Assembly (NCBI RefSeq): GCF_902652985.1
Contig: NC_047026.1
Span: 5,208,001-5,272,000, forward strand
Origin: Pecten maximus
Lineage: Eukaryota
Direction: 5' to 3'
Length of the DNA stretch: 64,000 nt
Shown here: positions 4,146-19,903 of the stretch, piece after piece
Numbering within the stretch: the stretch's first letter is position 1
Layout of the letters: every line of letters starts with the position of its first letter
The notes under the pieces: generated by a model
What the model was told of the DNA's origin: nothing
The model's input: the letters and a program-made list of their open reading frames with translations, nothing else
The model's database searches: none
Position numbers and translations under genes: made by a program

Positions 4146-4925
4146 GATCAGTGAACCTGACAAACAAGAAAATTTTAAATCAAAACATTTTAATTTCCTG
4201 CAAAAATAACCAATGGCCTAATGATCTATGAATGGATAGTTTAGGAACTGTGTCATGGCAGAATATTCTTATTTTAAACAATGTAGTTATGGAATTTTGA
4301 AAAGAAAAGAAATCGAATTTAGGCCTAAAAATACCTGTGTTTTCACTAACACTAGGTCTGTTTTAATTTAATATCCTATATTTTTGTGCAATTTTCACGA
4401 AAGGACTATATAGCTACTAAAGTCAAGATTCTTCGCCTATATAACCTATGAAAAAAACTATCTGAAAAATCAAAAGATTTTCCCACCTTTATGCTATATA
4501 CAGTATATATATACATGTATACCTACTCTGTTTTTTCTGGCATGTATATATAGTATAGTAGAAACGCATGTACTATTTTTAGGCCTTGTGTCACTCTTCA
4601 TAGAAAAGCAGTTGTGGACAAGCATTGAATATAGTTATATGAATTTCTGTCATTTCTTTTAATTACACACAAGCCATAGTAACATTTAAGGATCCCCATT
4701 TTATACATATACTTATATGTCAGTGTGTTGTTAAAACATTTTACAGCAAATTATATTTAACACAATTTTTTATGCCGAAACTACTTTCATCCAGCTTTTT
4801 AGTCAAGTTTATAAGCAAACGATAAAATCTCGTTCGCTCAGGTAAGAGGCCTTACTCTTGATTTTTCATTTCAATATATAACAGCAGCAATGATCAAGAC
4901 CATGTCATATACACATGAGGGGCCC

Positions 4926-5776
4926 TGTGCTGTTACATTTGTTAAGAAAACTCAATTTTAGTTAACCTGTTATAAGAGTTGTTTCCCTTTGACTGTAAAA
5001 TGCGTTTTTGGTATTTTCGCGCCACCGAGAACTCTTTAGTGAAGAAGGTGAGAAAAAGTGATAGTAAACTAAACCATGATGTGATAAGCTGTGCGGCGAG
5101 CGATTGGGAAAGTTTTCGGAAGTTTGGGAGACCATAATGTAAGTTTTATAGGTATTGTTATTATGAACATGTTGCAATATGCTGCAATAGAGAATGTTGT
5201 AATGTTACTGTCAGAAATCAGTCATAATAAGCCCTGGCATTTGTCGCGATAAACAATGCCATGTGGTGGAGTCATTTCGCCCATATATTTCCTGTCATAA
5301 TTTGTGTAGATTTTGGGTCGAGTTGACCTAGTCATATGGAAGTGATATGATATGGAGTACTGTGTAAGCTTTACCAATGTATGAGAATTGTATGTTTTCG
5401 TCTCGAATAATATTCAGATGAAGTAAATTAGGTTTGGTTTGGAATTAATCAGTTTATAGTATAGAATATGTGATGAATACAAAGGCACATTGTCATTAAT
5501 GATCAAGTCACATTGATAGTCGATCTACTTGTAGTTAAGTACTTTTCAAGTACATTTCAAGTTTGTTCAAGTACATTTCAAGTTTGTTCAAGTACATTTC
5601 AAGTTGAGCTGTATTGTGAAATATCAGTCAAGATGCTTTGTAAGTCTATTCATTATTCTAAAACAGCTTTATTTCTGTTTGTTACAGTCCTTTACTACTA
5701 CTATGGAATAAATTACTACGCACTTAAAGCAGCTGTCTCGGGTATTTTGTTATCGCCCTGATCTCGTGCAAGTACA
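4926..5776 (+). repeat. 5' LTR (851 bp)
   Basis: Appears identical by eye to 12116-12966 (offset 7190; the ORF track gives identical peptides in both). AATAAA at 5707-5712; internal 21-bp tandem repeat at about 5545-5605. Confidence 0.97.
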
Positions 5777-5846
5777 GTAAAGGAATTACCAATTACCTCC
5801 CCTTTTGCTGTCCGGAACTCTCTCGAGTAAATGGAACACAGATGTC

Positions 5847-8800
5847 ATGGCCAGCAATTCAGGAAAAGAAACTGACTTTGCTCAACATCAGTCGGCTACT
5901 AGTGAACGACGACTCATAACCATGACTGAAAAGGCTGCAGAATTGTTCTCAGAAAGAGTCAGAACATTTCAAGATAAATTACACACAGCATGGGTCGCAG
6001 TCCAAAATGAATTGGAACTAGGATCAAAATGTGAGGGTAACGCAGAACTCTTAAAGAAAGCTCACTCTTCAATATGCTTAGCATACGCAAGTTATCGCTT
6101 AGTATCTCGTGAGTATGTTTCCTTCCTTGGCGGCGCAAGGTCAAAGAAGGGCGAAGAACTTTTACAACGACATGATGTTGATGACAAACTCAATGATGAT
6201 CTTGTCAGTAAATTTCTGCAGGGAATTGAGACAAAAAGGACACAAATGGACATTGATGAAACTAGGTCAACATCAAGAAGGTCACGAGGTTCAAGGACAT
6301 CAGCAAGGTCACAGGGCTCAAGTACAAACTCATTTATTAAAGCAAAAGCAAAGGCTGAAGCTGCTAGAGCAGGGGTTGCATTTACTGAGAAAAGGGCTTT
6401 GCTTCTCAAGCAGCAGGCTATTTTAAAGGAACAAGAAGCCCTATCAGTAGCACAGGCAGAAAGAAAATGCCAAGAAATTGAGGCTGATCTACAACTGTTG
6501 CAGGATCAAAAGATGTGTGCAGAGGCAGAAGCCGAGCTGGAAGCATTGGAGACAGTTGATGGGTGGGACGACGACGGACAGACGTCGGGTCTGGAAAGGA
6601 AAAATGTTGTTCCGTCAGATGTGAATCCTAGGGAACGTGTTCAACAGTATATAAATGAACATTCAACAACTTATGAGTCAAACAGTCCCATAACTCATGA
6701 CCAGCCAAATACACATTTGAATAACATGTCTCGACAACCAACTAGATTTATTAGTCCTCAATTGCCCACAGAGTCAGCAGTCGAGGGTCAACAACAACCA
6801 TCTACAGATTTGGGTTATCGGTCGTCTCATAGAGCTTTAAACCCCATGGTAGAAAACTTTGTTCCTGCAACTATAACAACAGAAATTTCAAGATTTATGC
6901 TGAGAAAGGACTTGTTGTTTTCAAGACTCACATCTTTTAATGACTCTCCAGAAAATTTTCTCCCCTGGAAAGCTGGATTCTTAAATGTTGTTAAAGAACT
7001 TGGTGTTTCCCCCACAGAGGAATTAGATCTATTAGTTAAGTGGTTAGGTCCAGAATCATCAAAACACGCAATCAGCATTAGGTCGTCCAATATAAGCAAT
7101 CCAGAGAGAGGATTACAGAGAACTTGGGAGAGACTAGAGGAGCGTTATGGTTCTCCAGCATTGATAGAGTCGACGTTAAAAAAGAAAATAACTGCACTGC
7201 CAAAGATAACTAACAAAGATTGTGCAAAACTTTATGTACTTCATGATACACTTATGGAAGTTTCATCGGCCATGGAAAATGAGAAGTACACTGAACTCCT
7301 TAGCTACTTCAACTCATCGACTGGGGTCAACCCAATTGTACAAAAGCTTCCTTATCACCTCCAAGGAAAATGGACTCAGAAAGCAACGAAATACATGAAG
7401 GCATATGGTGTCAACTATCCACCATTCTCAGTATTTTGTGACTTTGTGAACGAGATGAGTTCTATGCTTAATAATCCAAGCTTCATGTATGATGACACAT
7501 CTGTCACCAGAGACAGCACAAACAAGAACAATGTCAATAGTACCAGACCATCAAAGGTCAAGTCCTATAAAACAGAAGTTGAAACCGTTAAAGATGTTCA
7601 TGCGAAGGGCAAGAATAAACCTACGTGTCCATTTCACAACACTGAGGGGCATTCACTAAATTATTGTCGTACCTTTAAATCAAAACCATTGAATGTGAGG
7701 AAAAGGTTTATCAGAGACAAGGGTTTATGTTTCAAATGCTGTGAGAAATCAGACCATATTGCCAAAATGTGTGGAGTGAATGTAACATGTAGTGTTTGTG
7801 ACAGCAACAGTCATCCGACAGCCTTACACGTTCATGGCGGGGAGAGAAAAGAAAATACAGAGACCAGCAGTACATACGGTCAACGAGTTGAGGATATTAA
7901 GACGGCATGCTCCAGAGTTTGTGGTGAGGTCAACTCATCTGGGAAATCCTGTGCTAAAGTAGTACTAGTCAAAGTTCACCCAAAGGATTCTCCAGAGAGA
8001 ACTTTCCAAATGTATGCCTTGATCGATGATCAAAGTAACAGATCTCTTGCCAAACCAGAATTCTTCTCTATGTTTCACGATGAGAATTATAGCGAGGTAC
8101 GCTATTCCTTGTCGTCCTGTGCAGGAGTGATTGAAACATCAGGCCGTAGGACGGAAACTGCAGGATTCATTATCCAAGACCTTGAGGGCAAATCATCTAT
8201 TGAGCTACCCAGCCTAACAGAGTGTAGTGAAATTCCAGATGTCAGAGAAGAAATACCAACACCAAATGCTGCCAGAAATCATTCACACCTTCAGGAAATT
8301 GCATCGAAAATCCCAGAGCTCGATGACAAATCTCAAATACTATTACTTTTAGGGAGAGATCTACCTGAAGCCCACCACGTTCTAGAACAGAAGACTGGTT
8401 GCAGAGGATCACCATACGCACATAGATTGCATCTTGGCTGGGTTGTCGTTGGCGAGACTTGCCTGGGCCAAGTTCATAGATCTGGATCAGATGTTTTCAA
8501 TGTTAAGAAAACATATGTGCTTAAAGATGGAAGACATTCTGTGTTTTCACCCTGTGAAAACCGCTTTGAACTTAAGGAAAACAAAAACAGTGATGACGTG
8601 TTTAAGATAACAAAGCACGACAACAAGGTGGGATTGTCGGTGGACGACAAACAATTCCTGGAAACTATGGACAAAGATTTCAGGAAAGAACACAACGGTA
8701 ATTGGAGTGCTCCACTTCCGTTTCGCACAATGAGGCCCAGATTGCCAAACAATAGGAACATGGCATTGAACAGGGCGCGCAACTTGTCAGCTAGCTTAAG

Positions 8801-11800
8801 GAGGGATCCTGCAAAAATGGAACATTTCGTAACATTTATGAAACGAATGTTTGACAACAACCACGCAGAGTTAGCTCCCCTTATGACTTCAGATGAGGAA
8901 GGTTGGTATCTGCCTATCTTTGGGGTGTACCACCCAAAGAAAAGAGACCAAATACGTGTTGTATTTGATTCATCAGCAAAATACAACGGTCTATCATTGA
9001 ACAACGTTTTGATGTCCGGGCCAGATCTCACCAACAACTTATTAGGAGTTCTCATGAGGTTTAGACGAGAACCTATTGGTGTGACAGCAGATATTCAACA
9101 GATGTTTTATCAGTTTAGGGTAGAAGAAGAACATCGTAACTTCCTGCGATTCTTCTGGTTTAAAGACAACAATCCCGACCTAGAACTTGTAGAATATCGC
9201 ATGTGTGTACATGTCTTTGGAAATAGTCCGTCTCCCGCGATAGCTACATATGGCCTCCACAAAAGTGCGGAAGCGGTTGAGGAGATCTACGGTGAGGATG
9301 TGACAGCGTTTGTACATAAGGACTTTTATGTCGATGACGGTCTGGCTTCGTTTTCAAATGTTGAAACTGCTATAGATGTGATGCAACGTACACAGAATGC
9401 ATTGGCTTTCGGAGGAAACTTGCGCCTACATAAGATAGCATCAAATAGTATGGATGTCATGAGTGCATTTCCAAAGGAAGATTTAGCTGGGGATCTAAAA
9501 AACTTGGACATATGTCAACAAGGCTTACCCCTACAAAGGAGCTTAGGGTTGACATGGGATTTGAACTCTGATAACTTTAAGTTCATTATACCGGAAGAGG
9601 TAGCTAACAGGAAGTACACCAGGAGAGGAGTTTTATCCACACTCAACAGCATTTACGATCCTCTGGGTTTCATCTCGCCAGTAGTGGTTCATGGAAGGAT
9701 CTTAATGAGGGATATGATAACAGAACAGACAGACTGGGATGAACCATTGGACATAAAATACAAAGAAGGTTGGGTTAAATGGTGTCAATCATTGAAGGAT
9801 TTGGAGGACTTGTCAATTTCTCGAACATACCTCCCAATTTCCCTGTCTAGCACTTCAGAACAGGAAGTCCACATATTTTCGGATGCTTCAGAGAAGGCAA
9901 TTTGCGCAGTGGCATATATGAAAGCAACAGACATAAATGGAGATACACATGTTGGATTCATTATTGGAAAATCCAAAGTATCACCTAAGCACGGTCACAC
10001 GATACCTAGGCTAGAATTATGCGCAGCAGTCATTGCGGTAGAGCTTTCAGAGACTGTGTCGGAACATTTGTGCTTTCCTGTGGAGCAGATGAAGTTCTAT
10101 ACCGATAGTAAAGTCGTGTTAGGGTACATCAATAACCGCGTCAGGCGTTTCTATGTTTATGTTGAGAATCGTGTCAACAGGATTCTGAGGACGACTCTAC
10201 CTAAACAGTGGAGTTACGTGTCAACCAATGACAACCCGGCAGACTTAGGAACACGACCAGTCTCATCTCATCTGCTAGATTGTAGTGATTGGATTCGAGG
10301 CCCAGAATGTATTCATACCTGCGAATTGACCTCTGATGAAACATTTCAGCTCCAATACCCTGAAAAGGACTCAGAAATTCGTCCTGAAGATGAAGTGCAT
10401 TGTTTAAAACTCTCAGTTCGTGGACACCATGAGTATGATCTTGGCACCAAACGTTTTGAGAAATTTTCGCATTGGGAAAATTTGGTACATGCTATCATGT
10501 TCCTGAAGAGTTTTGCCCAGAGACTATCAGTTCAGAAATGCAGCATGAGATCTACACTGGGAGAGAAGCCGATTGCACAGGATTTGAGAGCTTCCGTCGA
10601 GAGACTCATTATAATAGAAATACAGAGAGAGGCATTCAGTAGGGAAATAAATTGTTTACTGAATGGCAAGGAGCTCCAGAAGGACAGTAGTATCCGGAGT
10701 TTGAATCCTTTCATTGACAATGATGGTATTGTTAGGGTTGGAGGACGCTTGAACAATGCTGACCTCAGCAAAATGGAGAAAAATCCTGTTTTGATCCCTA
10801 GACGTCATCATGTAGCAACATTATTAATTCGTCACTATCACGACAAAGTCAGACACCAAGGCCGCCTTCTGACTGAAGGAGCAATACGAAACGCTGGGTT
10901 TTGGATCGTTGGATGTCGACGCATGATAAACTCGTATCTTCGTAAGTGTGTCCGGTGTTTGAAATTACGAGGAAAGCAACACTTTCCTAAGATGGCCGAT
11001 CTTCCATGCGATCGGTTGGATCCAGCTCCCCCATTCAGTTTCATTGGAATAGACGTTTTCGGACCATGGACTGTCCTCAGTAGGAAAACGCGTGGTGGGC
11101 AGGCTCATTCGAAGAGATGGGCTGTGATTTTTACATGTTTAGTCATCCGTGCTATTCATATAGAGGTGATTCAAGAAATGACATCATCCAGTTTCATAAA
11201 CGCACTTCGTCGTTTCATTTCATTAAGAGGAGAGATCAAACTCATTCGATCGGATTGTGGAACCAACTTTGTTGGAGCAGCAAAAGATATTGGTGCAAAC
11301 ATTATTGATATCGAAGAACCCAATCTTAAAGCCTTCTTAGCACAGAAAGGCATCTCTTGGAGGTTCAACCCGCCTCATTCATCCCACATGGGTGGGGTCT
11401 GGGAGCGTCTGATTGGCATTTCGCGGAGAATTCTTGATTCACTCCTTTTGGATGTTCCGCACAAAAACCTTACACATGAAGTCCTCTCTACATTCATGGC
11501 AGAGGTTTGTTCCATTATAAACGCGAGGCCCCTTACAGGTGTTCCATCGGACCCGGAGTCTCCTATGCCACTGACACCATCAACCTTGTTGACATTGAAG
11601 ACGAATCATACAGTGGAGTCCTTCTGTATTGAGGAATTCTCTCCGATGGATCTTTACAAAAGTCAGTGGAGGTGCGTTCAACAACTCGCGAACTGCTTCT
11701 GGAAAAGGTGGAAGAATGAATTTCTTTCATCTCTACAGGCAAGACGGAAGTGGCAGAGCGAAAGCAAAAATGTTACTGAAGGGGACGTTGTCCTCGTCCG

Positions 11801-11966
11801 AGACAAAACGCTACATCGTAACGAGTGGCCAATGGCTGTCATTAGTAAAGCCATTCCTAGTGAAGATGGTCGTGTCCGCAAGGTGGAAGTGCGTGTTGGG
11901 AGAGATAAATTTTACCTCCGACCTGTCACTGAGGTGGTAGTTCTTGTGCCCAAAGGATTGGAGTAG
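5847..11966 (+). CDS. BEL/Pao Gag-Pol polyprotein (Gag zinc knuckles, protease, RT, RNase H, integrase)
   Basis: Uninterrupted ORF, open from 5805 with first ATG at 5847. Three Cys/His boxes (CPFHNTEGHSLNYC, CFKCCEKSDHIAKMC, CSVCDSNSHPTALH), protease ALIDDQS, RT FYVDDGL, Pao RNase H FSDAS...TIPRLELCAA, and integrase HHCC plus DVFG/SDCGTNF/WERL. Domain order is typical of BEL/Pao. Confidence 0.97.
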   Translation: MASNSGKETDFAQHQSATSERRLITMTEKAAELFSERVRTFQDKLHTAWVAVQNELELGSKCEGNAELLKKAHSSICLAYASYRLVSREYVSFLGGARSKKGEELLQRHDVDDKLNDDLVSKFLQGIETKRTQMDIDETRSTSRRSRGSRTSARSQGSSTNSFIKAKAKAEAARAGVAFTEKRALLLKQQAILKEQEALSVAQAERKCQEIEADLQLLQDQKMCAEAEAELEALETVDGWDDDGQTSGLERKNVVPSDVNPRERVQQYINEHSTTYESNSPITHDQPNTHLNNMSRQPTRFISPQLPTESAVEGQQQPSTDLGYRSSHRALNPMVENFVPATITTEISRFMLRKDLLFSRLTSFNDSPENFLPWKAGFLNVVKELGVSPTEELDLLVKWLGPESSKHAISIRSSNISNPERGLQRTWERLEERYGSPALIESTLKKKITALPKITNKDCAKLYVLHDTLMEVSSAMENEKYTELLSYFNSSTGVNPIVQKLPYHLQGKWTQKATKYMKAYGVNYPPFSVFCDFVNEMSSMLNNPSFMYDDTSVTRDSTNKNNVNSTRPSKVKSYKTEVETVKDVHAKGKNKPTCPFHNTEGHSLNYCRTFKSKPLNVRKRFIRDKGLCFKCCEKSDHIAKMCGVNVTCSVCDSNSHPTALHVHGGERKENTETSSTYGQRVEDIKTACSRVCGEVNSSGKSCAKVVLVKVHPKDSPERTFQMYALIDDQSNRSLAKPEFFSMFHDENYSEVRYSLSSCAGVIETSGRRTETAGFIIQDLEGKSSIELPSLTECSEIPDVREEIPTPNAARNHSHLQEIASKIPELDDKSQILLLLGRDLPEAHHVLEQKTGCRGSPYAHRLHLGWVVVGETCLGQVHRSGSDVFNVKKTYVLKDGRHSVFSPCENRFELKENKNSDDVFKITKHDNKVGLSVDDKQFLETMDKDFRKEHNGNWSAPLPFRTMRPRLPNNRNMALNRARNLSASLRRDPAKMEHFVTFMKRMFDNNHAELAPLMTSDEEGWYLPIFGVYHPKKRDQIRVVFDSSAKYNGLSLNNVLMSGPDLTNNLLGVLMRFRREPIGVTADIQQMFYQFRVEEEHRNFLRFFWFKDNNPDLELVEYRMCVHVFGNSPSPAIATYGLHKSAEAVEEIYGEDVTAFVHKDFYVDDGLASFSNVETAIDVMQRTQNALAFGGNLRLHKIASNSMDVMSAFPKEDLAGDLKNLDICQQGLPLQRSLGLTWDLNSDNFKFIIPEEVANRKYTRRGVLSTLNSIYDPLGFISPVVVHGRILMRDMITEQTDWDEPLDIKYKEGWVKWCQSLKDLEDLSISRTYLPISLSSTSEQEVHIFSDASEKAICAVAYMKATDINGDTHVGFIIGKSKVSPKHGHTIPRLELCAAVIAVELSETVSEHLCFPVEQMKFYTDSKVVLGYINNRVRRFYVYVENRVNRILRTTLPKQWSYVSTNDNPADLGTRPVSSHLLDCSDWIRGPECIHTCELTSDETFQLQYPEKDSEIRPEDEVHCLKLSVRGHHEYDLGTKRFEKFSHWENLVHAIMFLKSFAQRLSVQKCSMRSTLGEKPIAQDLRASVERLIIIEIQREAFSREINCLLNGKELQKDSSIRSLNPFIDNDGIVRVGGRLNNADLSKMEKNPVLIPRRHHVATLLIRHYHDKVRHQGRLLTEGAIRNAGFWIVGCRRMINSYLRKCVRCLKLRGKQHFPKMADLPCDRLDPAPPFSFIGIDVFGPWTVLSRKTRGGQAHSKRWAVIFTCLVIRAIHIEVIQEMTSSSFINALRRFISLRGEIKLIRSDCGTNFVGAAKDIGANIIDIEEPNLKAFLAQKGISWRFNPPHSSHMGGVWERLIGISRRILDSLLLDVPHKNLTHEVLSTFMAEVCSIINARPLTGVPSDPESPMPLTPSTLLTLKTNHTVESFCIEEFSPMDLYKSQWRCVQQLANCFWKRWKNEFLSSLQARRKWQSESKNVTEGDVVLVRDKTLHRNEWPMAVISKAIPSEDGRVRKVEVRVGRDKFYLRPVTEVVVLVPKGLE

Positions 11967-12115
11967 ACACTTTATTGTCTAATTAGATGGCAAAACTTTA
12001 ATAGTGAGAACTGTTGTGTAATTTGTCAACATGAGTGGTATTCGTATACTAGAACTCTGTGATTTTTTTGTTGATCAATATGTAAGAGAGTGGTAGTTGT
12101 ATACCAGACGGGGAG

Positions 12116-12966
12116 TGTGCTGTTACATTTGTTAAGAAAACTCAATTTTAGTTAACCTGTTATAAGAGTTGTTTCCCTTTGACTGTAAAATGCGTTTTTG
12201 GTATTTTCGCGCCACCGAGAACTCTTTAGTGAAGAAGGTGAGAAAAAGTGATAGTAAACTAAACCATGATGTGATAAGCTGTGCGGCGAGCGATTGGGAA
12301 AGTTTTCGGAAGTTTGGGAGACCATAATGTAAGTTTTATAGGTATTGTTATTATGAACATGTTGCAATATGCTGCAATAGAGAATGTTGTAATGTTACTG
12401 TCAGAAATCAGTCATAATAAGCCCTGGCATTTGTCGCGATAAACAATGCCATGTGGTGGAGTCATTTCGCCCATATATTTCCTGTCATAATTTGTGTAGA
12501 TTTTGGGTCGAGTTGACCTAGTCATATGGAAGTGATATGATATGGAGTACTGTGTAAGCTTTACCAATGTATGAGAATTGTATGTTTTCGTCTCGAATAA
12601 TATTCAGATGAAGTAAATTAGGTTTGGTTTGGAATTAATCAGTTTATAGTATAGAATATGTGATGAATACAAAGGCACATTGTCATTAATGATCAAGTCA
12701 CATTGATAGTCGATCTACTTGTAGTTAAGTACTTTTCAAGTACATTTCAAGTTTGTTCAAGTACATTTCAAGTTTGTTCAAGTACATTTCAAGTTGAGCT
12801 GTATTGTGAAATATCAGTCAAGATGCTTTGTAAGTCTATTCATTATTCTAAAACAGCTTTATTTCTGTTTGTTACAGTCCTTTACTACTACTATGGAATA
12901 AATTACTACGCACTTAAAGCAGCTGTCTCGGGTATTTTGTTATCGCCCTGATCTCGTGCAAGTACA
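12116..12966 (+). repeat. 3' LTR (851 bp)
   Basis: Copy of 4926-5776, preceded by the polypurine tract and followed by the TSD. Confidence 0.97.
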
Positions 12967-13044
12967 GGCCCCCTTGGCTTGAGGCTTTTAAATGACAGAA
13001 TGACAACACGCCTGACTATTCGATTTCCTCAGGCAATTCATTAC

Positions 13045-18459: not shown

Positions 18460-19903
18460 AAACAAGAGGCCCAATGGGCCTGTATCGCTCACCTGACACT
18501 ACAGCAACTTTGAAGTGGATTTAGGTTATTTCTGCAGATACTATGCTGATAACCACTTAATTCAAATATCAGTGAGGCTAAGTTTCCTCCTGTGAATATA
18601 TATTCTACTTCTTCATTCCAGTACACAACTGGCCTAATATCTGGTCTCTTTGCTAACAAGAAATCATTGTTTAAAGAATTCAGCCTATTTGACCTTGAAT
18701 GTAGGTCAAGGTCATTCATTTGAAAAAACTTGGTAGCCCTTCACCACACATGCTACAGGCCTAATATTAAGTCCCTGGGCTTCTTAGTTATTGAGAAGTC
18801 GTTAGAAGATTTTAGCCTATTTGACCGATGTGACCTTGAATGAAGGTCAAGATCATTCATTTGAATAAACTTGGTAGCCCTTCACCTAAGCATGCTACAG
18901 GCCTAACATTAAGTCTGTGGGCTTCTTGGTTATTGAGAAGAAGTTGTTTGAATATTTAAGCCTATATTAGCCTATTTGACACATGTGACCTTGAATGAAG
19001 GTCAAGGTCATTCATTTGAATAAACTCGGTAGCCCTTTGCCCTAGCATGCTACAGGCCTAATATTAAGTCTGTGGGCTTCTTGGTTATTGAGAAGTCGTT
19101 TGCAGATTTTAGCCTATTTGACCCATGTGACCTTGAATGAAGGTCAAGGTCATTCATTTGAACAAACTTTGTAGCCCTCCACCAAGGCAAGCTACATGCC
19201 TAATATTAAGTCCCTTGGCCTCTTGGTAATTGGTAAGAAGTTGTTTAAAGATTTTAGCCATTTTGAGCCATGTGACCTTGAATGAAGGTCAATGTCATTC
19301 ATTTGAACAAACTTGATAGCCCTTCATCCCAGCATGCTACAGGCCCAATATCAAGTCCCTGGACCTCTTGGTTATTGAGAAGTTGTTTGATTTTAGCCTA
19401 TTTGACCCAAATGACCTTGAATGAAGGTCGAGATCATTTATTTGAACAAACTTGGTAGCCCTTCATCCAGCATGCTACAGGCCCAATATCAAGTCCCTGG
19501 GCCTCTTGGTTATTGAGAAGAAGTTGTTTGACGATTATAGCCTATTTGACCCGTGTGACCTTGAATGAAGGTCAGGGTCATTCATTTGAACAACTTAGTA
19601 GTCCTTCTACCCAGCATGCTACAGGCCCAATATCAAGTCCCTGGACCTCTTGGTTATGGAGAAGAAGTTGTTTGAAGATTATAGCCTATTTGACCCATGT
19701 GACCTTGAATGGAGGTCAAGGTCATTTATTTTGAACAAATTTGGTAGCCCTTCACCCCAGCATGCTACAGGTCCAATATCAAGTCCCTTGGCCTCTTGGT
19801 TATTGAGAAGAAGTTGTTTAAATGAAAAGTTGACGCCTGACAGACGGACGGACGCCGCACCACGGCATAAGCTCACTTGCCCTTCGGGCAGGTGAGCTTA
19901 AAA
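18460..19903. mobile_element. Helentron/HINE-type non-autonomous element carrying about 8 copies of a ~144-bp tandem repeat
   Basis: Starts AACAAGAGGCCCAATGGGCC...GCTCACCTG. GACCTTGAAT recurs at 18691, 18832, 18987, 19129, 19274, 19413, 19557 and 19701. It ends with a (GACG)n microsatellite and the terminal hairpin GCTCACTTGCCCTTCGGGCAGGTGAGC. Confidence 0.75.

Follow-up and report, generated by a model that had tools for sequence, protein, structure and literature searches.

Self-primed reverse transcription is said to have been described by Levin and colleagues between 1995 and 1998 for Tf1 and Tf2 of fission yeast, which are Ty3/gypsy chromoviruses. Minus-strand priming is a step that defines every long terminal repeat (LTR) retroelement and retrovirus and, to our knowledge, it is established in two forms only, by a host tRNA, whole or as a fragment, or by the contiguous self-primer known from the Tf1/sushi group. 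In this work, we analyze a BEL/Pao retrotransposon located in a 64,000-nucleotide stretch of the scallop Pecten maximus (RefSeq assembly GCF_902652985.1, contig NC_047026.1, positions 5,208,001 to 5,272,000, forward strand). This whole stretch is referred to as the window, and all coordinates are positions in it. The LTR of the element contains an intron, and its removal quite probably assembles the primer for the reverse transcription of the element itself. BEL/Pao elements (Belpaoviridae) have been described by the International Committee on Taxonomy of Viruses (ICTV) as primed by host tRNA-Arg or tRNA-Gly (PMC8742986), an insect member has a primer-binding site (PBS) for tRNA-Tyr (PMC4580426), and self-priming of the Tf1/sushi group is mentioned in PMC3601003. 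A full-text literature search, which covered few subscription journals, turned up neither self-priming nor an intron of the LTR for BEL/Pao elements, and the main surveys of the group are silent on priming.

The sequence downstream of the 5' LTR of the window element, GTAAAGGAATTACC, has no TGG. Its complement is found in the LTR of the same element, in two pieces separated by a putative intron. The parts involved are as follows.

4926..5776, + strand: 5' LTR of 851 bp, TGT...ACA, with 100% identity to the 3' LTR
5114..5138, + strand: 3' part of leader exon 1, the TAAT of which (5135-5138) completes the PBS complement
5139..5687, + strand: LTR intron, GT..AG, 549 nt; splice sites retained in the copies of the family, junction in contigs of runs X1 and X6
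5139-5144, + strand: intron donor GTAAGT, with TAAT immediately before it
5658-5664, + strand: branch-like CTAAAAC in the LTR intron
5667-5687, + strand: pyrimidine tract and AG (acceptor), end of the LTR intron
5688..5696, + strand: start of exon 2, 9 nt TCCTTTACT, reverse complement of 5776-5784; 3' part of the proposed primer
5707..5712, + strand: polyadenylation signal AATAAA, 19 nt past the acceptor
5776..5788, + strand: PBS AGTAAAGGAATTA, non-tRNA type, beginning at the final base of the LTR; 13/13 complement of the spliced junction
5797..5817, + strand: leader segment 3' of the PBS, a potential pairing partner of exon 1 in helices 2 and 3

All the features of a consensus GT-AG intron are present, i.e., donor, branch-like site, pyrimidine tract, and AG. 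Without splicing there is only a contiguous match of 9 bp (5688-5696 with 5776-5784), and the joining of TAAT to exon 2 turns it into a 13/13 complement of 5776-5788; a second GTAAGT (5640) lengthens the pairing by 1 nt only. Exon 1 could form additional helices, GGGAG (5126-5130) with CTCCC (5797-5801) and 5114-5123 with 5807-5817. Since both add pairing, the functional exon 1 would comprise at least 25 to 40 nt, in agreement with contigs in which transcripts reach at least 5108. The position of AATAAA so close to the acceptor leaves only ca. 35 to 45 nt for the exon-2 part of the repeated region (R). An earlier note, made from the letters of the window alone, had already pointed to the non-TGG sequence after the LTR, the donor, branch site, acceptor, and AATAAA, the three pairing lengths, and the GGGAG/CTCCC helix; every coordinate was found in the sequence, the pairing came out the same when recomputed, and the helix can indeed form. 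Taken alone, the evidence from this locus would be modest, the match being moderately unlikely by chance: for either of the two GTRAGT donors the probability of a 4-nt extension is 1/256, and a non-consensus GT at ~5204 yields a 5-nt extension by chance.

The element was found in 18 sequencing runs, and four of them were mapped on positions 4600-9599, all as Logan contigs, which carry neither strand nor isoform ratios. The joint predicted by the earlier note, 5138^5688 (GT..AG, 549 nt skipped), is seen in contigs of two runs, X1 and X6, that come from two studies. Contigs break at 5138, 5109, and 5688, the pattern of a de Bruijn graph expected where two isoforms branch. Unspliced contigs cross the donor in 4/4 runs and, in X6, the acceptor as well. 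In the two runs that are surely RNA (X5 and X7), contigs go from the interior and the polypurine tract through 4926-5574 unspliced, indicating that the intron was retained there in the 3' copy. The host flank (4600-4925) is uncovered in all four runs, which argues against genomic DNA as the origin of the contigs, and the transcripts extend to at least 5108. The LTR intron of the window element is genuine, spliceosomal, and inside R, and we count its splicing as demonstrated.

A search with the reverse transcriptase (RT) region through the reference genome of P. maximus (918,306,378 bp in 3983 contigs) gave more than 70 BEL/Pao copies, at 51 to 62% identity, and the 5' ends of 18 of them were read, most over 1.6 kb only. 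They make up 12 families, that of the window included. Solo LTR relatives (L009-L015 and L038-L045) have no interior, and so no PBS could be obtained from them. The layout is common to the 12 scallop families: a pyrimidine tract and YAG are directly followed by a core of 6 to 9 nt, which is the reverse complement of the sequence starting at the LTR end or one base earlier, and a donor lies 170 to 800 nt upstream, where the 3 to 8 nt that precede it lengthen the PBS complement. The exon 1 ends with GTAAGT donors are illustrative.

Window family: exon 1 end TAAT, donor GTAAGT, extension +4 nt
L049: exon 1 end AAGGA, donor GTAAGT, extension +5 nt
L053: exon 1 end CACGTT, donor GTAAGT, extension +6 nt
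L059: exon 1 end CACAGC, donor GTAAGT, extension +6 nt
L063: exon 1 end ATCAGGAT, donor GTAAGT, extension +8 nt

AATAAA is found 12 to 69 nt downstream of the core, the signal is placed as in the window in 15 of 18 families, and the duplex terminates at the LTR boundary, within 1 nt, in every family. Core and PBS change together from one family to the next (TCC/GGA, TTC/GAA, ACT/AGT, TCT/AGA, and TTT/AAA), and the PBS variants (GTAAAGG, GTAAAGA, GTAAAAG, GTAAGAA, GTGAGAA, and GTCAAGA, among others) each match the LTR pieces of their own family.

The covariation holds when families are compared with each other. The extension before the donor has a mean of 5.0 nt (minimum 3) within the own family against 0.35 nt between families (18 families). 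With GTRAGT donors only, an extension of at least 3 nt was found in all the 13 families having such a donor (3 to 10 nt), against 10 of 357 cross-family pairings (2.8%). The total length of the complement across families is 10 to 17 nt. For the helices beyond the PBS, the 30 nt of exon 1 upstream of the immediate extension, which was removed, were paired with the 30 nt that follow the PBS helix. This exon-1/post-PBS duplex reached -13.2 kcal/mol within families and -9.8 kcal/mol between them (Mann-Whitney p=3e-5); as a class, the predicted extra exon-1 helices are supported. Both halves of the exon 1-exon 2 junction covary with the PBS in ca. 23 families, as had been anticipated for a real junction. 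Judged by sequence, the comparative data lift the match far above chance, and an intron-split PBS complement, deeply conserved, is present in the window element and in at least 20 related families.

Some other features of the scallop families may be mentioned. A (T/C)CCCTTTG motif is found upstream of the donor in the window (4985-4995) and in L046-L049, L053, and L058 (~95 to 150 nt before their donors), families that are otherwise unalignable, and a CCAC-like motif immediately precedes the paired extension at the majority of scallop donors; either motif could belong to the promoter, enhance splicing, or bind a protein. The L048 family (G000:C2:50378713-50379632) has only 16 nt between AATAAA and the LTR end, and therefore its unique 5' region (U5) must be nearly absent, with R reaching almost to the LTR boundary.

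The same arrangement extends to environmental sequences. A metagenome scan provided 80 BEL/Pao contigs with 32 to 50% identity, to which we applied a strict automated test (CA immediately followed by the PBS, a core of 6 nt or more behind a pyrimidine tract and AG, and a donor close to the consensus that lengthens the complement by 3 nt or more). Of the 80 contigs, 16 passed, against 1 in a control in which the sequence was reversed, not reverse-complemented. In the midpoint-rooted RT tree, the positive contigs fall to either side of the root, and the longest complements were 17 nt (+10, L079) and 15 nt (+8, L086). The unclassified contigs are mostly incomplete or have 5-nt cores, and TGG at the PBS was seen in none of them. 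A contiguous complement of 10 to 13 nt without an intron was found in four lineages. L086 belongs to one family with L085 and L087; exon 1 is the same in all three and the PBS of L085/L087 is one base apart from that of L086 (GTCTGCTC vs GTCTGATC). Only L086 is fully matched (8 nt, against 5 in L085/L087), a case of LTR/PBS mismatch within a family. It should be noted that the metagenome contig NSIT01000151.1 (L065) has an RT region identical to that of the scallop L047 family and is, therefore, probably DNA of scallop or of a closely related host. The matches named after a Sedimenticola metagenome-assembled genome (P0004 and P0013) are likewise probably host contamination.

Natural loss of the intron is found in the sister family, the closest to that of the window (62% RT identity). 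One of its copies, L046, has LTRs of 263 bp in which ...CCATAAT and TTCTTTACT are adjacent and form a contiguous 13-nt PBS complement; its PBS differs from the window PBS at one base, which is compensated. This copy is intact (open reading frame [ORF] of 2044 aa), has its own 5-bp target duplication (CGTAC), and lacks the intron in both LTRs, and it is therefore an insertion derived from an RNA in which the R copy templating the LTRs had been spliced. A search with its LTR recovered three other sister copies (L146-L148) with an intron of 671 to 744 nt (GTAAGT...TTACAG) exactly between ...CCATAAT and TTCTTTACT; two of these intron-bearing copies are 5' LTRs followed by a PBS as in L046. In contrast, the L047 family (13 copies) has kept the intron in all its ~29 LTRs, so that loss must be rare and the replicating RNAs normally unspliced in the 3' R. 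No intron-less copy of the window family was present among its copies examined in the reference genome. The earlier note had reasoned that the intron would survive if the 3' R were left unspliced, and the unspliced 3' contigs, the retention in L047, and the precise loss in L046 fit this idea. A degenerate LTR of the window family (L008/L012, G000:C16:28522373-28523093) has two deletions that removed the donor and acceptor regions and are no precise intron loss. Within the LTR intron of the window, a 21-nt unit, AAGTACATTTCAAGTTTGTTC, is present in three tandem copies (~5541-5603), and two copies of the family have one unit fewer. These repeats are enhancer-like, and the intron may persist in part as their carrier.

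We consider it quite probable that the window element, with its LTR intron in R, primes its own reverse transcription with the spliced leader joined across this intron. Transcription would start upstream of the donor, at or before ~5108, and, with the 549-nt intron removed, the last nucleotides of exon 1 would directly adjoin the initial 9 nt of exon 2. The spliced leader would then anneal to the PBS, either in cis, within the genomic RNA, or in trans, as a short spliced LTR transcript (exon 1, exon 2, and polyadenylate tail) on an unspliced genome, and other exon-1 segments may pair immediately downstream of the PBS. A cut after ...TAC(T), as made by RNase H in fission-yeast Tf1, would leave the 3' end that primes minus-strand DNA. 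Strong-stop DNA would not extend beyond U5 and the short segment of R in exon 2 (35 to 95 nt across families), and the intron of progeny LTRs would therefore come from the 3' R copy. This copy would normally be unspliced; if spliced, the new element would have intron-less LTRs. In retroviruses and Tf1, the progeny PBS is copied from the primer. The PBS of these elements is probably rewritten from the primer in each cycle too. Its correspondence to the spliced junction, instead of to the genomic sequence, would follow from this, and the covariation would have a simple reason. Given such copying, a PBS that continues into the complement of exon 1, and not of the intron, would be the trace of a spliced primer.

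Several points weigh against this model. We infer the use of the duplex as minus-strand primer from its position and the covariation; the primer cleavage site, the transcription start, the action in cis or in trans, and priming only after splicing are inferred as well. Either asymmetric splicing (5' spliced, 3' not) or a primer in trans is required, and the 5' polyadenylation signal 19 nt past the acceptor must be bypassed. As to the transcripts, X1 and X6 are labeled RNA by guess only; the junction is absent from the sure-RNA runs X5 and X7, although these have no contigs over 5602-5768; and, as contigs carry no transcription start, the junction contigs could derive solely from the 3' LTR. 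Donors are weaker (GTACGT, GTAATT, and GTATG), with extensions of only 3 to 4 nt, in two scallop families (L057 and L061) and in several environmental families. Finally, with a PBS copied anew from its primer every cycle, the covariation would prove the use of spliced RNA, not selection for pairing.

Other explanations were weighed on the same data. Transcription could start at the apparent acceptor, so that the first 6 to 9 nt of an unspliced RNA pair as in Tf1 and the match of exon 1 is a coincidence. CAG^T does resemble an initiator, with an A/T-rich stretch ~30 nt upstream, the distance from the core to AATAAA (~20 nt) is that expected for the start of R, the 9-bp match is contiguous without splicing, and the contigs give no transcription start. 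A start at this CAG^T was our first working idea, dropped as the exon-1 extension covaries. We now regard such priming as very improbable given that the extension covaries in 13/13 families with a GTRAGT donor (2.8% cross-family), that the junction 5138^5688 is seen in contigs, and that copies of the sister family differ by exactly the intron. Besides, what precedes the core in every family is a canonical pyrimidine tract and YAG, not a conserved TATA or initiator, and cores of 5 to 7 nt seem too short as sole primer. Even less credible, and in our opinion hardly worth retaining, is a host RNA (tRNA, tRNA fragment, or other small RNA) as primer with an incidental similarity to the LTR, in spite of tRNA priming being the accepted rule for Belpaoviridae (PMC8742986) and of the tRNA-Tyr PBS in the insect element (PMC4580426). 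The PBS, which lacks TGG, has no match in Rfam, and ARAGORN detected no tRNA in the window or at 14 genomic loci bearing the 14-nt PBS complement. This 14-mer has 22 exact matches in the 918-Mb genome, 18 of them outside the element and mostly in a 157-bp satellite, and none of the 18 is in a tRNA. The search for a host tRNA or fragment, the alternative that the earlier note had itself named, was thus negative for tRNAs, at the level of exact 14-nt matches, and for Rfam RNAs, no exhaustive comparison of all host tRNAs over 10 to 12 nt having been made. Moreover, the PBS varies by family and always matches the LTR pieces of its own family, so that no single host RNA could serve, which largely refutes a host primer. 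The 157-bp satellite and a second repeat of ~500 bp (G000:C3962:98889-100156 and C1:54771436-54771949; L017 and L033-L037) contain the exact 14-nt complement, and these loci showed no sign of being a primer source and no tRNA.

The pairing could also be real and serve to control splicing or 5' polyadenylation, or in circularization, dimerization, or packaging, with something else as primer. Long-range leader pairings with such regulatory roles occur in retroviruses, helices 2 and 3 exceed what a minimal primer needs, and the polyadenylation signal after the acceptor has to be bypassed anyhow. However, the duplex of each family terminates exactly at the LTR/PBS boundary, the required place for the 3' end of a minus-strand primer; the 10 to 70 nt that separate the LTR from the ORF contain no other PBS; and the copying of a spliced primer in plus-strand synthesis would yield just such a PBS, a mirror of the spliced junction. 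We therefore hold a purely regulatory role to be unlikely. The chances are equally low that the junction contigs derive from DNA or transcripts of intron-less processed LTR copies in the sampled animals. X1 and X6 being RNA only by guess, the passage of the X6 contig from the LTR end into a foreign flank, and the existence of such copies in the sister family speak for this origin. Against it, the host flank (4600-4925) is uncovered in every run, unlike in whole-genome DNA, and no processed copy of the window family has been seen in the reference genome; in any case, these copies would themselves arise by splicing at the same sites.

The element itself is an intact and young BEL/Pao (Belpaoviridae) LTR retrotransposon, with these additional parts.

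4921..4925, + strand: 5' target-site duplication GGCCC; identical 5 nt beside both LTRs, 3' copy at 12967-12971
5847..11966, + strand: single, intact gag-pol ORF of 2039 codons with DUF1759 gag, Pao peptidase A17, integrase zinc-binding and core domains, and DUF5641
12106..12115, + strand: polypurine tract AGACGGGGAG, adjoining the 3' LTR; in related families as ...GGGGAG/GAGGAG
12116..12966, + strand: 3' LTR of 851 bp, including the second intron copy (12329-12877)

The assignment to BEL/Pao is based on the Pao peptidase A17, DUF1759, integrase, and DUF5641 domains of the ORF (PF05380, 8e-47; PF18701, 4e-26; matches to PF00665, PF03564, and PF17921 are weaker and slightly below the curated cut-offs). 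The closest proteins are polyproteins of bivalve BEL/Pao elements, and named relatives are found also in ticks, fish, frogs, and gastropods. Structurally, the direct TG..CA LTRs, the short target duplication, and the polypurine tract are those of Belpaoviridae, and the tRNA-complementary PBS of the ICTV profile is absent; this is a descriptive, not a phylogenetic, feature, so that membership by protein content holds. The family is small, consisting of the window copy, three copies that retain the 5' LTR and leader (93 to 97% identity), and a few further LTRs. The window also contains, at 18667-19676, a tandem array (unit of ~144 bp, at least six copies, 60 to 87% alike) unrelated to the BEL/Pao element.

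For the group as a whole, we lean only slightly toward the view that a large and old part of Belpaoviridae, in many animal hosts, has replaced the tRNA by an LTR primer made by splicing. Reverse transcription would then depend on host splicing as a licence, each cycle would renew the PBS from the spliced primer, and the intron would be kept through an unspliced 3' R or a spliced LTR RNA acting in trans. BEL/Pao, a third family and one that reference works describe as tRNA primed, appears to prime itself, with a primer sequence that is absent from the DNA and made by the host spliceosome, a new link between retrotransposition and splicing. The model would account for the absent tRNA PBS, the conserved intron-like sequence of the LTRs, and the much shorter LTRs of some copies. 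Intron-less copies would be a natural record of the RNA isoform that was reverse transcribed and, if the model is true, solo LTRs, too, could supply a small spliced primer RNA acting in trans. The model predicts a genomic RNA spliced at the 5' end and unspliced at the 3' end, or a dedicated small primer RNA, and an RNA ending in ...TAAT^TCCTTTAC(T) on strong-stop DNA. Annotation pipelines that look for tRNA PBSs would mis-score such a BEL/Pao clade.

Compared with canonical Belpaoviridae (Semotivirus), the window element has the same gag, Pao protease, RT, RNase H, and integrase, LTRs within the range of 0.2 to 1.2 kb, and a polypurine tract before the 3' LTR (PMC8742986). It differs in a PBS that matches only the spliced LTR RNA of the element itself. 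Outside the group, single traits are shared with quite different systems. Deltaretroviruses and foamy viruses have their major splice donor in R and an acceptor far downstream, and their splicing produces subgenomic mRNAs. A functional donor in the LTR part of the leader is thus common to them and to the window element, which, in contrast, has both splice sites within one LTR and, as proposed here, a primer-competent leader as product. Copia is primed by a cleaved half of the initiator tRNA; its PBS also lacks TGG and the 3' end of its primer also comes from RNA cleavage, but this primer is a fragment of a host tRNA, whereas in the BEL/Pao families there is no match to a host RNA and the PBS covaries with their own LTR. 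Penelope-like elements keep a spliceosomal intron in the terminal repeat, the retention that we see here; they are not LTR/integrase elements, and their intron has no known link with priming. The closest parallel is Tf1 and the sushi group. No tRNA PBS is present in either case, and a sequence of R from the element's own transcript (13/13 in the window element, after splicing) complements the site right after the 5' LTR. In both there are extra leader helices around the duplex, and the 3' end of the primer would need a cut in the RNA at the end of the duplex. The window element is, however, BEL/Pao by its domains and not Ty3/gypsy, i.e., it would work like Tf1 without kinship. While the complement of Tf1 is contiguous and formed by the first 11 nt of the mRNA, that of BEL/Pao has 10 to 17 nt and is probably internal, since exon 1 seems to pair over at least 25 to 40 nt. 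Above all, the BEL/Pao primer is split in the DNA by an intron of 100 to 800 nt (549 nt in the window element) and is whole only in the spliced RNA.

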